A stretch of DNA of 64,000 nt from Podarcis melisellensis (lineage: Eukaryota), in NCBI GenBank assembly GCA_964234715.1, contig OZ174283.1; one strand, given 5' to 3'. The position numbers and the translations under genes are program-made. Numbering within the stretch: position 1 is the stretch's first letter; the number at the start of each line of letters is the position of its first letter. The notes below the pieces were generated by a model. It did not search any database and was not told where the DNA came from. It saw nothing but the letters and a program-made list of their open reading frames with translations. Positions 1-64,000 of the stretch are shown here, one piece after another.

Positions 1-59
1 CGCAGCCCGGCACCCTCTTCTCCCAGGCAGTGGCGCACAGGTGGAGGTACATGTTCCCC

Positions 60-649
60 GATAAATCAGGGCATTACATCTACCTTCGATACCTCGAAAT
101 ATGTCTACCTTATCGGTTGCGTTGCATAGATTCGCATTTGTTAGAGCCAGATTTAATGTGTTCCCCTCAAATGTGCCGAGCAATAGATTTTCTAACGGTA
201 AAACTTCTGTTTTATGCGCATGTGACAACAAATCAATAGAATCCCTTTATCATATCTTGTTTAATTGTCCTTTATATATTGTTCCCCGATCAAGGATTCT
301 GAGTTCAATCATTTTGGAAACTGTTGCTAAACCACCTGAATTACATCTAGCTTATCTACTCCAGGACATTGACTCTTATAGAACATTACAGGTTGCCAGA
401 TTCCTGATTTCAGTTCTTTCATATAAAAGACTTCATGGAATGCTGCATGACTATTAAAAATCTAGTAAACTCTATGCACCATCTTTATCTTCAAGGCCAC
501 AATACGGTACATCTAGAGATTGTACGTAATGTGAAGGAGATTATGCGTTGACATATTTTAGTTGATATTTTAGAATGTAAAATGCTATTTTATTTATTGA
601 TTGGTTTTACCTTGTGGGCTTATAGCCGAATAAAGTATTATCTATCTAT
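60..649 (+). mobile_element. 3' fragment of a non-LTR retrotransposon (RTEX-like) with zinc-knuckle C-terminus
   Basis: ORF 101-457 has ARFN..PS and CAC...ESLYHILFNCPLY...R; followed by AT-rich 3'UTR, AATAAA and (TATC)n tail. Confidence 0.7.
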
Positions 650-784
650 CAGCGGCGTAGCGTGGGGGGTGCAGGGGGGGCCGGCCGCACCGGGCGCAAC
701 ATCGGGGGGGGGCGCGCTCCACGGGTTATGGGGCGCAAATTACTTGCCTTGCCCCGGGTACTGACAACCCACGCTACGCCACTG
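650..784. mobile_element. Mini hAT-like element, copy 1
   Basis: TIRs CAGCGGCGTAGCGTGGG / CCCACGCTACGCCACTG; near-identical to 1061-1207; no TSD of its own. Confidence 0.8.
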
Positions 785-838
785 ACTGCGCGGAGAAAGA
801 GGGGCATAGGCAAGGACGCAAAAGGAGTCCCACGGGGC

Positions 839-927
839 CATAGCTGTCAACTTGTCCCTTTTCTTGCGAGGAATCCTATTCGGAATAAGGGAATTTCCCT
901 TAAAAAAGGGAAAGGTTGAAAGCTGTG
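839..927. mobile_element. Small hAT-type MITE nested in the composite
   Basis: TIR CATAGCTGTCAAC / GTTGAAAGCTGTG; 8-bp TSD CACGGGGC (831-838, 928-935); related copy at 13680-13771. Confidence 0.8.
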
Positions 928-1060
928 CACGGGGCCGCTCCATATAGGGACGATCATCCTGACCGGGTAGCTTCGTTTTCTTCTGAATTTAAAATAAATT
1001 CCGAAAAGTGGTGCGGTGGGACAGAGCGCTCGTCTCTGACTGGGGACTCCTGGTTCTGAT

Positions 1061-1207
1061 CAGTGGCGTGGCGTGGGGGGTGCAGGGGGGGCCGGCCGCA
1101 CCGGGCGCAACATCTGGGGGTTAGGGTTAGGGGGCACAAATTCACGGGTTAGGGGGCGCAAATTACTTGCCTTGCCCCGGGTGCTGACAACCCACGCTAC
1201 GCCACTG
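1061..1207. mobile_element. Mini hAT-like element, copy 2 (supplies the right end of the composite)
   Basis: TIRs CAGTGGCGTGGCGTGGG / CCCACGCTACGCCACTG; a degraded right half recurs near 37978-38033. Confidence 0.8.
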
Positions 1208-25600: not shown

Positions 25601-26654
25601 CGGCTCTGTGGTGGCTCCCAGTTTGTGGAAAGCCCTTCCCAGGTAGGATCTTCACCCTTTAGGTGCCTGGCGAAAACATTTCTCTGTAAGCAGGCCTTAG
25701 GCCGATTATAGTGACCTTTTAGAAGTGGGCGGTTTATCTTTCATGTTCTCTTTCTCCCCCCCCCCCCCGGTTTTAACCTATCTCTGTGGGGGGGGGGTTT
25801 GTTTGTCAGTCTCTTCGGGCTGCAACGGCTAAAATAAAGCGACAAACAGATTTAATAATTAAAGGGAAGTTCTCTTTCTGCACATAACTGTGGCATTATG
25901 GGGGAAGTATTGCTTCTTTTCTCTGGCATTCTGGGAAGTCTCGCTTATAATCTTTTCTCTGCTTCTGCACACACTGTACAAACCGGTTCCAAATACCAAG
26001 ACATTCCCTCCTTGCTCAGTTCATCTTAAATTCATGATGCCCTGTTCTCAATGCATAGCTGACCACATCTACGGAACTCGATTATTATATTCTTTCATAT
26101 TATGATCAATCATTAGTAATTGTTTTAGTCATGCTATATCAATCTTTAGTTATAATTTAATTAGGAGGTTTCATGCCTGTCTAGTTCCAGCTCCGTTTCC
26201 CAGCCTTTAATCTATTGGGGATTAATGTCTATACGTAATTCCCGCCTTGTACATATGTTAACCAACCAGCAACAAGTTGCTTTGTGTTTGTATCAACCAA
26301 TCAGCCACAAGCACACCTGTGGCAATGTTTGTAATAATCAATAAATAACGATGATGGTTATTTATTAATTATTCCTACAAATAATAAATAATCATCATCG
26401 TAGTCACGACAAGAGGAGCCCCGTTTCTCCGGCGGCAGCCAAGGGCTCACCTTCCTGTGGGCCTTGGAGCGCGTGACGCCCGGCAGCCCCACGTCGTGCC
26501 TCGTCTTCCTGCCCAGGATGTGGAACTTCTGCCGGTTGACCTTCACCTCGAAGGGGTTGCTCGACACCGAGGGGGCGGCGCCGGAGGGGAGGCCCTGAGC
26601 CCGCCTCGCCGCGGCGCCACCACCGGGCCCCTTCCGCTTGCCCGCTTTGCCCAT
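4585..26654 (-). CDS. NOP14: NOP14 nucleolar protein 14, complete gene span (18 coding exons, 857 aa)
   Basis: 18 GT-AG exons with consistent phases sum to 2574 nt. Recognisable motifs: NPFEVKVNRQKF, DKRFGE, LTHYG, HFGGG, PTSDF.HPV, FIPE, KREFKGAVREIRKD. Confidence 0.97.
5476..5631 (-). CDS. NOP14: NOP14 exon 17 (156 nt)
   Basis: LEFGRKQESNKKEQERKRLIHKHKREFKGAVREIRKDNQFLARMQLAETME. Confidence 0.96.
6064..6418 (-). mobile_element. Sauria SINE
   Basis: GGGACGCGGGTGGCGCTGTGG head, (ACCTTT) tail; 14-bp TSD TAGCATCTAGTGTA. Confidence 0.9.
6943..7058 (-). CDS. NOP14: NOP14 exon 16 (116 nt)
   Basis: ELFDSVLKQLESKGQRCPLVCEKKKPVPLKLFTPKIVK. Confidence 0.94.
7420..8165 (+). mobile_element. Old, degraded CR1-type LINE fragment
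   Basis: Decayed similarity to the CR1 RT C-terminal region (KFADDTKL...KCKV...) with many frame breaks. Confidence 0.55.
8424..8571 (-). CDS. NOP14: NOP14 exon 15 (148 nt)
   Basis: LSCLDLCLDLVKRCAVTYGSLPSFSEIMQPIQMLL...HHLQ. Confidence 0.93.
9707..9863 (-). CDS. NOP14: NOP14 exon 14 (157 nt)
   Basis: YTLVHPFASLGKHSDLLVV...GMNHL; AG/GT flanks. Confidence 0.93.
10065..10218 (-). CDS. NOP14: NOP14 exon 13 (154 nt)
   Basis: CTVTTVQDVVKGLFVCCLFLEYISLSRRFIPELVNFLLGVLYMAMPNKEVQ. Confidence 0.95.
10300..10481. mobile_element. Tigger-like MITE
   Basis: TA|CAGTGGTATCTC ... GAGGTATCACTG|TA. Confidence 0.75.
12374..12475 (-). CDS. NOP14: NOP14 exon 12 (102 nt)
   Basis: LIYLKIIAVLFPTSDFCHPVVTPSLVYMSQLLTK. 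Confidence 0.95.
13274..13409 (-). CDS. NOP14: NOP14 exon 11 (136 nt)
   Basis: PLYDLCQMFPKAASNHVKLVLQDATHDMEEILAVKGHAAFPGLDM. Confidence 0.94.
13680..13771. mobile_element. Small MITE, same family as 839-927 (inverted)
   Basis: CACAGCTGTCAAC ... GTTGACAGCTAT ends and shared internal sequence. Confidence 0.7.
13834..14092. mobile_element. Penelope-like element remnant forming a ~90-bp-arm inverted repeat with hammerhead motifs
   Basis: Arms ~13881-13973 and ~13993-14088 are near-perfect reverse complements; 13-bp TSD TAGGTATTTATAG; CTGAAGA-stem-GAAA motif. Confidence 0.75.
14980..15065 (-). CDS. NOP14: NOP14 exon 10 (86 nt)
   Basis: KLFEFLLEYVGELARQTPPELKTVDKLV. Confidence 0.93.
15192..15322 (-). 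CDS. NOP14: NOP14 exon 9 (131 nt)
   Basis: PESYEQLKAELLGRTTEEQLLVIERIRKSNHPSLAVGNKAKLE. Confidence 0.95.
16281..16563 (-). CDS. NOP14: NOP14 exon 8 (283 nt, acidic region)
   Basis: DGKLNIDDDKDEEE...EVPYLFA; AG/GT flanks, phases fit neighbouring exons. Confidence 0.92.
17183..17351. mobile_element. Tc1/mariner-type MITE (CCGTATTTTT ends)
   Basis: TA|CTGTATTTTTCG ... AAAAAATACGG|TA. Confidence 0.75.
17459..17587 (-). CDS. NOP14: NOP14 exon 7 (129 nt)
   Basis: TDRLRRMCGDEPEKEKKPKHISADDLADGFLLDKDDRRMLSYK. Confidence 0.95.
18635..18757 (-). CDS. NOP14: NOP14 exon 6 (123 nt)
   Basis: PDEYDMIVRELVFEMKAQPSARMKTEEELAKEEQKRLLQLE. Confidence 0.95.
20383..20517 (-). CDS. NOP14: NOP14 exon 5 (135 nt)
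   Basis: RERQTQRENTLELTEKLNSDWKEVQAFLFHKTPKSERQNEEEKPK. Confidence 0.93.
20750..20892 (-). CDS. NOP14: NOP14 exon 4 (143 nt)
   Basis: ELTAAHFGGGG...KSRKELIEEMIAKSKLEK; AG/GT flanks. Confidence 0.95.
21303..21524. mobile_element. Tigger-like MITE
   Basis: TA|CAGTTGTACCTTGG ... CCAAGGAACGACTG|TA. Confidence 0.75.
21712..21853 (-). CDS. NOP14: NOP14 exon 3 (142 nt)
   Basis: KNYEKKNIYNLNEDEDLTHYGHSLADIEK...ERGILS; AG/GT flanks. Confidence 0.95.
22089..22326. mobile_element. Tigger-like MITE
   Basis: TA|CAGTGGTACC ... GAGGTATGACTG|TA. Confidence 0.7.
23253..23478. mobile_element. Tigger-like MITE, same family as 1774-1961 (inverted)
   Basis: CAGTGGTACCTCGGGTT / GAGGTACCACTG|TA and shared internal sequence. 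Confidence 0.85.
23915..24049 (-). CDS. NOP14: NOP14 exon 2 (135 nt)
   Basis: RIQTLQKEYKEKEKSNVFKDKRFGEYDTKISPEEKMMKRFALEQQ; AG/GT flanks. Confidence 0.95.
24287..24638 (+). mobile_element. Sauria SINE
   Basis: tRNA-like head with GGTTCGAATCC B-box, CCTTTACCTTTACC tail; TSD TAGTTAGGAAA. Confidence 0.9.
26451..26654 (-). CDS. NOP14: NOP14 exon 1 CDS (204 nt, ends phase 0)
   Basis: GCCATGG start; MGKAGKRK...NPFEVKVNRQKFHILGRKTRHDVGLPGVTRSKAHRK; donor AAG|GTGAGC. Confidence 0.95.
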
Positions 26655-27278: not shown

Positions 27279-27492
27279 TTGGTTTTTTTTAAAAAATAAT
27301 ATTTATTAAAGTTTCAAAAAAGTTAAAGAAGAAAACAGAAAATACAAAATACAGAAAAATAAAAACAATTAAAAACAAGACAATCTTTCCGTGTCATATC
27401 TTTCATTTACTTGTTTCCCTGACCTCCTCACACCTCCCTTTTTTGTATTCTAGTTCAATTAGTTATTTCAGCAAATCCTTTCCATCTTTGCT
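27279..27492 (-). mobile_element. 5'-truncated retroposed 3' end (L1/Tx1-like 3'UTR)
   Basis: 15-bp TSD CAGACAGTGCATTTG (27264-27278, 27493-27507); AATAAA and A-rich tail on the minus strand. Confidence 0.7.
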
Positions 27493-28353
27493 CAGACAGT
27501 GCATTTGCAAGTTGCGAATGAGATGACTGTGACAGCCGCGCAAAACTGTTACTATTGCAGGTTAGCGGGTGGAACTGAAGCCGGTTAGATTTTCTAGCTT
27601 TAAAAAGTCTCCCGTGTAGAGTGAAGCCCTTGTGCTGGCACGTTGCTCTTTCAAATGTTTAAAAGCTTAGAAAATAAAACGAACATTTTCAGGTGAAATA
27701 AGGTTTGAGTTAGAGAGTATTTGTTCCTGCAGCAGGACATTGGAAAGCTCTTCAAAACCCCTTTCAGTTTGCCAAAAAGACTCCGGGACGTTGGATTATT
27801 CGTGAAACCAGCTTACTTTTTAAAACAGTTTCTCTAAAAAAATAAGTCAACATGCTTGCTGAAAAACTGATATTAGCTATACCTTTTTGGAACAATAAAT
27901 GTCAAAACAGAAGTTATTCCTGCATTTCAAGGTACTGCACTAGATCAGTGTTTCCCAACCTTTTTTGGGCAAAGGCACACTTGTTTGATGAAAAAAATAT
28001 CGAGGCACACCACCATTACAGCCCCGTGACGTCAGCACGCAGCGTCACGCCGGGAGGGACGCACGAAAGTGTAACTTTCAATTTTTTCCCCTCCCCCTTG
28101 CCGGGGAACCTCCAAGCTTTAGGGGTGGGGGGGGGAGGAGGCAGCAAAGCGAGGGACTGAGGGACTCCTCCAACGACAAGGGTTGGGGAAGAAGAGAAAG
28201 TTATAGTTGTTTTTTAAAAAGTGATAATTTCATTGTTCTGTTTTTTTGTAAACCGCTTTGAAGGGTTCCTTCTCGGCACGCCCCCCCCCCACCCGACAAT
28301 CAAGCAGCGTATCAATTCCATGAAGCACCAAATGCAGGCGCGTTTTAACTCAC

Positions 28354-28470
28354 GTCTCGGAAGTGGGCGAGGCTGCGCTCGACCAGGGCGCTGAGACACT
28401 CGTAGGCCGAGCCCGCCTGGAGGAAGAGCTGCGCCAGGCACATCGCCTCGCTGCGGAAGAGGGAGCCCAT
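28354..28470 (-). pseudogene. ATP6V0A2: Captured copy of ATP6V0A2 first coding exon (39 codons, intact donor); isolated gene fragment
   Basis: [39 protein letters not shown]|GTGAGT vs recalled human [39 protein letters not shown]. Same 117-nt boundary; Kozak GCCATGG; no other ATP6V0A2 exons seen in the window. Confidence 0.9.
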
Positions 28471-29174
28471 GGCGGAGGGCGCCCAGGCCGGGCCTGAGGA
28501 GGCGCAGCGGCGGGAGCGGCAGAGGCGGCGTCACCGCTCTCCTCGGCGCCGCCTCCGCTCCGCCGTCGCCGCTGCTGCCGTCCCGCTGCGGAGGCGGCTC
28601 CGGGGACTGGCGGGTCCCCCGCTGCCCGGTGCCATGGAGAGGAGGCAGGCGAGGGAGACGGAGACCCGAGTGGCCCCAAGTCCCGCGGCTTCCGGCTTCT
28701 CCTCACAAGTCCAGGCGCCGCCAAGAGAGAAGGGGCGGGGAAAGCCTAGAGCGGCCAACCGCACGCTCACCTCGGAAGCTCCGGTCAATAAGACAGCGCC
28801 ATTGGCCCGGGCGCTCTGCCCCTCGGCACCTCTATGGCTGGCCCGAATACCGAGCGAGAAGCGGTTTCGTCTCTGTGGTAGGGAGGAGCAAAGAAGGGCC
28901 CAGCCAGGCGGGCCGAACGAAAGCGAGCCCAGAGTTCCTGTGCTTCCCTGGTGGGGCCGGCCATTGCCTTTCCCTTGGGCAGGGCGAGGGAATTCCCAGG
29001 CTGCAGCCTCTCGCGCTGGTGCCTCAAAGGCCTTTGCCTTTCCCGTATCACATGTGGAAAAGGGGGCTGGATCCAGTGACGCAACTCGGAAAACTGTTAG
29101 GGAAGCCAGAGCAGGAAAGTGAGTGGGAGGCGGCGTCGCCGCTTTAACCCACGTTTCCTTTTTGAAAGAGAAAC
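28471..29174 (-). promoter_or_regulatory. Captured CpG-island 5'UTR/promoter upstream of the ATP6V0A2-like exon
   Basis: Very GC/CpG-rich; GC box GGGGCGGGG (~28732), ATTGG CCAAT box (28801), CCGGAAG ETS motif, CACATGTG E-box (~29049), TGACG (~29076). Confidence 0.7.
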
Positions 29175-30242
29175 CAGTGTTTCCCAACCTTTTTTGGACT
29201 CGCTCGCAGCACACCAGGCAACAGCTCGCGGCACATTAGTGTGCCGCGGAACACCGGTTGGGAAACACTGCACTAGATGACCCTTGGAGTTCCTTCCAAC
29301 TCCACAATTATATGATTCTGTGGCAAAATACAGTGTTGTTGTTTTTTTGGTGTGTGTGTGTATATATATAATATATATATTCTACATTGTAAATATGGTT
29401 CCCTATCTTTACAGTTTCATTCCTGGTAAATTCCAGTTAGTAAACAAATGTTTATTGTGTTGATGGTCTGTCTCGTCTAACACTTATACTATTTATTAGT
29501 TTATTTTGTTCGAAACCCTGATTCTGATCAATGTTGATTGTGATTAATTTTAATTGTATAAATAGTTCTTTTTTATTATGTTACTTTATGTCCCTCAATT
29601 GCGGGAATTATTTATATGGGGATCCAGAGAGAGAGCCATTTCACTGAGCCCGCGAGAGAGGAGCGCCCTTCGCCGGGCGAGCTGGAAGTGCCTTCGAAGC
29701 AACAGCGCCGCGCTCGCGAGAATGCTGGACAGAGAGCGGGGCGGGGTCTCAGCGCTGCCCAGTTAGAAGTGGGAGGGCCTTCGGTCCCGCTCTCTTTTGC
29801 GATTGGCCCTCGCCGATTTCCTCCCCGCAGACTGGCGACACGCCTCCTTGGAGCTTGAGCAGGAAGTGGGCGCGGCGATCCCACCCCTGCTCCGATTGGT
29901 GGCTCCGGCTGTCCATCCAGGGAGGCGGGGCGGTGGGCTCGCCTGGGGAACCGGAAGCTGTCAGCGCTTGTGCCGGGTTCGCCGAGCGAGGAGGTTCCGC
30001 GCCGCCGCCGGGGATGATGGGAGGCTCTCAAGATGGCGCCGGCGCGTCGGTGGCGGAGTGAGCGCGCCGTCTCCCGCCTCTAGCCCGCTCTGGCGCTGTG
30101 AGCGGCTGGCCGCGACGGCTCTTGCGGGGCCGAGTCCCCCGAGGGCGGGCGAGGGAGTTTGGCCGGCCGGCCGGCCAGCAGCCGGACTCGGAGTTGGCTC
30201 TTCCCTCCGCGCGCGCGCGCCTCTGTGAGGGCGAAGGGGGGC

Positions 30243-64000
<33,758 letters not shown>

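Follow-up and report, generated by a model that had tools for sequence, protein, structure and literature searches.

A stretch of 64,000 nt from Podarcis melisellensis (contig OZ174283.1 of assembly GCA_964234715.1, free of any N), referred to below as the window, was analysed for an element of 1325 bp (27946–29270) that lies between the genes NOP14 and HTT. The element is very probably a transposed Pack-hAT, a non-autonomous DNA transposon of the hAT superfamily, whose cargo derives from a gene of ATP6V0A2 type, namely from its 5′ end; this degree of confidence refers to the element as such and does not extend to the mechanism of capture. Its ends, its target-site duplication (TSD), the split target, the identity of the captured exon, the multicopy state of the cargo and the existence of a distinct expressed copy were all observed. 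Host DNA other than transposable-element DNA stands between the terminal inverted repeats (TIRs), transposase is lacking and several copies exist, as in the multicopy Pack-TIR elements of other animals.

The ends were examined by searching the TIR 15-mer, with two or fewer mismatches allowed, in the 64 kb and comparing the number of hits with the expectation and with 100 shuffles. Three occurrences were found against 0.15 expected, and none of the 100 shuffles gave three; the claim of a sequence-only reading that perfect 15-bp TIRs and an exact 8-bp TSD enclose 1325 bp was borne out by this test and by the coordinates (Table 1). The third occurrence is an internal duplicate of the left end, positions 29175–29197 being identical to 27946–27968 over 23 nt. 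A TSD of 8 bp and short TIRs that start with CAG or TAG (about 10–25 bp) are both as found in hAT elements, and the TIR looks Charlie-like (CAGTG... ends), with an apparent resemblance to MER58-type ends. The centre of the duplicated CACTAGAT is a palindromic CTAG.

The target of the insertion could be reconstructed within the window. The right flank (29272–29320) belongs to a very abundant repeat resembling a short interspersed nuclear element (SINE), of which five other, diverged copies are present in the window. When the two flanks were joined with a single CACTAGAT between them, the alignment to these five copies ran unbroken across the junction, and the interrupted repeat holds the ACTAGAT motif once only. 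A formerly continuous repeat copy is thus split by 1333 bp (the element plus one TSD). The rejoined repeat with its single motif takes the place of an empty site, and it speaks against a chance arrangement as well as against an assembly error. A chimeric join that placed ATP6V0A2 5′ DNA between NOP14 and HTT during assembly is very improbable, because a misjoin would not give exact TIRs together with an 8-bp duplicate of a motif that is single in the interrupted repeat; furthermore, 77% of the words sampled from this DNA occur in the best-matching public run. It would suit such a join that no single public contig spans the whole stretch and that the letters private to the window at 28344–28779 occur in no contig, but collapsed multi-copy contigs drop minority variants, which accounts for the missing private letters.

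Two observations concern the repeat itself. Its tail (..ACTAGATGACCCTTGG..CCTTCCAACTC..ATTCTATGATTCT) was located at 29272–29320, 2608–2638, 36217–36264, 37652–37678, 42486–42536 and 48140–48187. In read contigs, other copies of the repeat, or other repeats, were also seen to pass straight into hAT ends, with CTAGAT at the point of contact (joints 27452 to 27940 and 27490 to 27943), and this motif may be a favoured hAT target.

Copy number along the element was estimated from the depth of k-mers (words) in public sequencing runs over positions 27400–29600, with contigs of three DNA-like runs (X1, X3 and X9) and the raw reads of one RNA run (X23). X1, the best-matching run mentioned above, is from the source species (organism A); X3 and X9, from separate studies, and X23 are from a related species (organism B), tentatively Podarcis muralis to judge by UniProt matches, a guess on which no conclusion here is based. 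In the unique flanks the depth was that of a single copy (X1, 85–175, or 85–155 by single contigs; X3, 88–100; X9, about 10–12, or 9.9–11.6). It was 1e5–1e6 from 27946 to about 28140 and 1e4–3e5 at 28140–28213, the former being very high-copy family sequence and the latter still family sequence; over the cargo (28214–29027, single contigs) it was 400–640 in X1, 1400–2500 in X3 and 103.6 in X9, and at 29176–29270 it was again that of very high-copy family sequence (1e5–1e6). That the ends of the element belong to a repeated family was evident from the high depth in all three DNA-like runs and from the numerous RNA reads whose match to the element breaks off in a loose end at 27946 or 29270. Members of this family depart from the window sequence past two points, about 28018 and about 28200, where loose ends were seen. 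To the transposon itself belong 27946–28200 and, probably, 29042–29270. Of the latter, 29042–29174 is present in about 100 or more copies in organism B, and one 86-nt record (depth 1195) matched it with 1 mismatch. The cargo borders are approximate, to within about 30 nt, and contigs of the cargo end about 30–55 nt inside the repeats on each side. The 1325 bp leave no room for a transposase, and no autonomous hAT transposase element was found within the window.

The cargo has a GC content of 0.65 and a CpG observed/expected ratio of 0.86. A CpG island on the minus strand, an ATG, 39 codons and a GAC|GTGAGT donor had been claimed from the sequence alone, and all were found in their places. The same reading had also described some 250 bp of intron-like DNA: the start of an intron is indeed present, but just 153 nt of it are low-copy intron, and 27946–28200 is high-copy transposon sequence. 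The features of the element and its target are collated in Table 1.

Table 1. Features of the element and of its insertion target in the window (strand as annotated; a point marks features without strand).
Feature	Position	Strand	Evidence or remark
Left half of the SINE-like target copy	27900–27945	+	aligned to the five further window copies
Left TSD copy, 8 bp, CACTAGAT	27938–27945	.	exact match to the right copy
Left TIR, 15 bp, CAGTGTTTCCCAACC	27946–27960	+	perfect
Left arm of the non-autonomous hAT backbone, very high-copy	27946–28200	+	word depth 4e4–6e5 vs about 100 in the unique flank
Low-copy host cargo, 841 bp (promoter, 5′ untranslated region (5′UTR), exon 1, start of intron 1)	about 28201–29041	-	depth 3–25x that of the unique flank
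Intron 1, first 153 nt, starting GTGAGT	28201–28353	-	RNA coverage ends at the donor
Coding exon 1, 117 nt = 39 codons, phase-0 donor GAC|GTGAGT	28354–28470 (ATG at 28470)	-	
5′UTR, about 270 nt	28471–28740	-	deduced from where RNA reads of organism B cover its homologous expressed copy
CpG-rich promoter-proximal DNA, about 300 bp	28741–29041	-	upstream of the deduced transcription start
Moderately repeated segment, backbone right arm or other repeat	29042–29174	.	depth 1e3–9e4, loose end at 29042
Complete 96-bp unit resembling a miniature inverted-repeat transposable element (MITE): second left end (29175–29197) and right TIR	29175–29270	+	without a TSD of its own
Right TIR, exact reverse complement of CAGTGTTTCCCAACC	29256–29270	.	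perfect
Right TSD copy, 8 bp, CACTAGAT	29271–29278	.	exact match to the left copy
Right half of the SINE-like target copy (..GACCCTTGG..CCTTCCAACTC..)	29279–29320	+	very high depth, loose ends at 29272 and 29318

The captured exon was identified through its 39-residue peptide, which aligned end to end with residues 1–39 of V-ATPase a subunits from the PDB (E about 1e-6). Identity to the N-termini of a2-type proteins was 74–82%, the a2-type family names having been assigned by way of a search with a sturgeon a2 protein, and 24 of 39 residues (62%, counted by hand) were identical in the alignment to a1; the proposed match to ATP6V0A2 exon 1 is upheld by this alignment over residues 1–39, which is closest to the a2 type. 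In a protein search of 1.84 billion representatives, 326 matches were obtained, the top ones being short open reading frames (ORFs) that read exon 1 into the intron. Pfam gave no match for the peptide, a query too short for it; the homologue search with the sturgeon protein listed only fish and no lizard ATP6V0A2, and no homologous proteins were found for a 227-residue ORF that runs across the promoter and the right arm.

Of the V_ATPase_I protein of about 850 residues, only residues 1–39 are present, and no further a2 exon was found in the 64-kb window, including the 27.9 kb downstream, by tblastn with three fish a2 proteins. As the window holds a single a2 exon with an a2-type peptide match, the exon is, judged from its sequence, a fragment of an ATP6V0A2-type gene and not a gene. 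The intact ATG, the 39 codons in frame, the consensus donor and the intact CpG island are what a genuine ATP6V0A2 5′ end or a relocated paralogue, flanked by unrelated MITEs by chance, would also display. Such an origin is extremely improbable in view of the missing downstream exons, of NOP14 exon 1 starting 1.3 kb away on the same strand, and of the exact TSD and the split repeat, which argue for insertion as a unit. In addition, residues 30 and 33, conserved as G in other copies and in relatives, are altered to V30 and S33 in the window copy, and none of 27 RNA reads of organism B carries the letter at 28537 that is common to the window and the multicopy consensus.

Depth ratios gave roughly 3–5 copies of the cargo in organism A and 10–25 in organism B. 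The multicopy contigs of all runs differ from the window at 28344, 28346, 28374, 28382, 28705, 28723 and 28779; since the positions are the same in all runs, the differences (T at 28374 and A at 28382 in the window among them) are private changes of the window copy, which diverges from the family consensus by about 1%; two of them give rise to V30 and S33. Logan contig L001 (926 nt, with the consensus exon P0151) aligned to 28145–29071 with 10 substitutions and 1 indel in 926 columns. Four of the 10 differences are CpG transitions in the window copy, small numbers that hint at methylation of the copied island. L001 reaches into the repeats by about 55 nt on its left and about 30 nt on its right before it breaks off; it is a collapsed contig of the family consensus and no proof of a parental locus.

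Further copies were recognised among proteins. Two "uncharacterized proteins" of Podarcis muralis in UniProt (P0001 and P0008) are read from such copies. P0001 departs from the peptide of the window copy at three places. In P0008, residues 1–38 correspond to exon 1 and the intron start with a 10-codon gap, residues 39–55 are the translated left end (27998–27948), and the residues past the TIR do not match the window flank; exon, left end and a different flank together mark it as a decayed copy of the same chimeric element elsewhere. The prediction that further TIR-flanked copies would exist is therefore supported by these two proteins as well as by the 3–25x depth. Between the two species, the cargo consensus differs at about 2 positions in 789 nt and the unique flanks by 5–7%. 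Recent horizontal transfer would account for this contrast; it was considered and not adopted, because a multi-copy consensus rebuilds the ancestral element, so that amplification before the species split suffices.

The RNA of organism B (X23) covered only positions 28362 to about 28740 and was near zero beyond the donor. All of this coverage came from pairs with the first mate on the plus strand, which in a standard stranded library corresponds to a minus-strand transcript, and the pattern fits a spliced exon 1 with a 5′UTR of about 270 nt. The reads carried G at 28537 (27/27) and a GCTGCT insertion after 28570 (23/26), and were also changed at 28640, 28656, 28658 and 28672; such letters were present in none of the multicopy DNA contigs of organism B. 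The transcripts hence arise from another copy, which is presumably, as the simplest case, the parental gene. No expression of the transposed copies was detectable in the RNA sample X23, and we infer that these copies are transcriptionally silent. In organism A, a 561-nt contig of X1 at the depth of a diploid single copy (156.7) showed 93% identity over 28780–29013, followed by 325 nt unlike the window, and is a candidate for the parental promoter. Cargo and parent appear to have diverged by about 4–7%. Taken with the divergence of about 1% between window copy and consensus and of about 5–7% between the flanks of the two species, this fits an old capture, before organisms A and B separated, with transposition continuing later.

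With regard to the origin of the chimera, it is proposed that the middle of a hAT element was replaced by about 841 bp of DNA copied from the 5′ end of ATP6V0A2. Capture would have taken place by template switching while a longer backbone element was being replicated or a gap inside it repaired, and transposition would have come afterwards, in line with the FoSTeST model. That the chimeric unit was transposed is well supported: it was amplified into a small family in at least two related lacertid species, a hAT transposase presumably acting in trans, and the window copy was inserted into a SINE-like fragment that lies 1.3 kb from the ATG of NOP14 and 1.0 kb from that of HTT, upstream of both. 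Template switching is the version that we prefer, by a modest degree. Both cargo borders (28200 and 29042) fall in family sequence where other members continue differently. The presence of a promoter and of an intron start in the cargo implies capture at the DNA level, and the earlier claim to this effect, made against retroposition, holds: the cargo includes promoter DNA (about 300 bp) as well as intron DNA (153 nt), and poly(A) is missing. A retrocopy of an ATP6V0A2 transcript that landed in a MITE, for which nothing speaks beyond the presence of exon sequence, has next to no probability, given the same upstream and intron DNA and the lack of both poly(A) and exon 2; a processed retrocopy is ruled out by the anatomy of the element.

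Compound transposition was weighed as another route and is considered possible, if clearly not probable. Two hAT elements, one in intron 1 and one upstream, would have flanked the ATP6V0A2 promoter and exon 1, and the outer left end of one and the right end of the other would have been paired by transposase, so that the intervening DNA was moved. Macrotransposons and alternative transposition are known from maize Ac/Ds, where the ends of two hAT elements act jointly and move the DNA between them, and hAT elements often insert near the 5′ ends of genes. The right side of the window element accords with this route, since it is a 96-bp MITE that is complete, left end included, yet is not flanked by a separate TSD, and so does a second element in the window (28–1207, TSD CTCCCAGG) with the same layout of a solo left end and complete units. 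The combination of a solo left end with a complete small element recalls Ac/Ds macrotransposons; in contrast to them, no evidence of two whole elements at a donor site was obtained here, and the left arm is without a partner end. The TIR search of the 64-kb window revealed no inner right TIR after the 255-bp left arm, the cargo borders lie inside family sequence, so that the arms are truncated and not whole elements, and the 561-nt candidate parental contig continues upstream in sequence that aligns to neither 29042–29174 nor the MITE. Capture by template switching is for these reasons retained as the preferred version.

Several points weigh against the interpretation as a transposed Pack-hAT with copied cargo. 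The library types of X1 and X3, on which the depth estimates are based, are not on record. No listed contig crosses either junction of the filled site, de Bruijn contigs being broken in repeats. Compared with the TSD consensus nTnnnnAn, CACTAGAT has the A at position 7 and an A instead of T at position 2, in a comparison confined to a single site. The right arm, in which a small MITE is present in full together with a left end, suits compound transposition better than simple internal replacement. Finally, parental ATP6V0A2 DNA with downstream exons was never directly observed, the 561-nt contig being the best candidate.

The age of the window copy was approached through alleles without the element. 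Left-flank contigs of organism B from two studies align to exactly 27945 and continue with about 20 nt unlike the TIR; this appears to be an empty site running into the SINE, with the insertion lacking there. In organism A, one X1 contig at single-haplotype depth (93.2) joins 27933 to 29281 through one G, and the flank near it is heterozygous (G/A) at 27854, with depths of 97 and 78.5. In this allele the element is missing along with the two TSD copies and a few bases of the flanks, so that it is not a precise empty site: the latter was predicted to read ...GGTACTGCACTAGATGACCC..., and the contig reads ...AAGGT-G-CCCTTGG.... Either excision that left a footprint, with resection, or a deletion unconnected with the element may have produced it. 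A second haplotype was also seen in the left flank of X1, with 4 differences in 208 nt (27467–27674; also noted at 27836–27854), and reflects either high local heterozygosity or a sample that differs from the assembled individual. It is rather doubtful that these data reveal a capture-prone lacertid hAT system, active now or until very recently, that repeatedly packages and spreads CpG-island promoters with first exons as a vertebrate counterpart of the rice Pack-MULEs, with the NOP14–HTT copy still polymorphic and the element-less X1 allele as its excision footprint.

The genes on either side were recognised from single-exon ORFs only. Exon 1 of NOP14 lies on the minus strand (ATG at 26654, donor after 26451) and exon 1 of HTT on the plus strand (ATG at 30243); they stand head to head across a gap of 3.6 kb, within which the element is 1292 bp away from the ATG of NOP14 and 973 bp away from that of HTT. 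The two genes are direct neighbours with CpG islands of their own (CpG observed/expected 0.97 and 0.94) and no gene between them in the window; in human, GRK4 presumably stands between them. The donors of NOP14 exon 1 (26451) and of the captured exon (28354) are both of phase 0 and point in the same direction on the minus strand. Because NOP14 intron 1 is thus also of phase 0, a transcript from the captured promoter could in principle be spliced to NOP14 exon 2 with the frame kept. With the element, a foreign promoter and a splice donor have come to lie between the starts of NOP14 and HTT, which could affect both annotation and regulation in this species. Upstream of the element, positions 27400–27547 are a very high-copy repeat with a word depth of up to 1e6 in all DNA-like runs.

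The second composite hAT-like element mentioned above belongs to a different family. Its exact 8-bp TSD (CTCCCAGG) is found at 20–27 and 1208–1215, its left end (CAGTGGCG...) starts at 28, and two complete small units lie at about 650–785 and 1061–1207, each with TIRs that are 90–94% complementary and direct repeats between the units that are 95–97% alike. Judged by eye only, 46–649 resembles the C-terminal end of ORF2 of a long interspersed nuclear element.

Among known systems, the Pack-MULEs of plants (Jiang et al. 2004; 2011) are TIR elements with fragments of host genes inside, in which GC-rich 5′ ends are favoured and which are mobilised in trans. The element described here shares with them an interior replaced by 5′ DNA of a host gene and the proposed mobilisation in trans; it differs in being a vertebrate hAT element with an 8-bp TSD and 15-bp TIRs, whereas Pack-MULEs are Mutator elements with TSDs of 9–11 bp and long TIRs. 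A nearer precedent is the survey by Tan et al. (2021; Nat Commun 12:4280, PMC8277862), in which 370 Pack-TIRs, 208 of them associated with hAT, were reported from 100 animal genomes; no more than four of them had several copies (Xenopus tropicalis accounted for three and alligator for one), and multicopy Pack-TIRs tended to capture GC-rich DNA. One of these elements, Pack-hAT-N8_XT of Xenopus tropicalis, took 291 bp of the CAPSL 5′UTR to three chromosomes, and the FoSTeST model was put forward there for the capture. The novelty of such capture in vertebrates was thus overrated in the sequence-only reading, as hAT capture in vertebrates had already been described in that survey. The present element resembles those Pack-hATs in that it is non-autonomous, is bounded by TIRs and has brought GC-rich DNA from the 5′ part of a gene to several loci, the TSDs of the copies being distinct there and those of the other copies not having been seen here. 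In contrast to them, its cargo is larger and comprises a promoter CpG island, the whole first coding exon, the donor and the start of the intron; its host is a lacertid, while lizard, anole and squamate are absent from the main text of that survey; its copies are apparently more numerous, at about 10–25 in one species; and it has an extra internal left end.

Lizard hAT elements with foreign DNA inside are likewise known from Anolis carolinensis, where hobo-type hATs take up extraneous "filler" DNA, often other transposable elements; in contrast to the present case, the parts consulted of that report (Novick et al. 2011, PMC3014272) do not mention that a promoter or exon of the host had been captured. 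In our literature search, no paper on such elements in lacertids was found, and none relevant for the letters of the TIR. A young multicopy family in lizards could allow capture and its consequences to be studied across copies, species and individuals. Measured against these systems, the capture of host DNA by hAT elements is itself already known; what is notable here is the completeness of the cargo, the number of copies, the presence in two species and the possible polymorphism.

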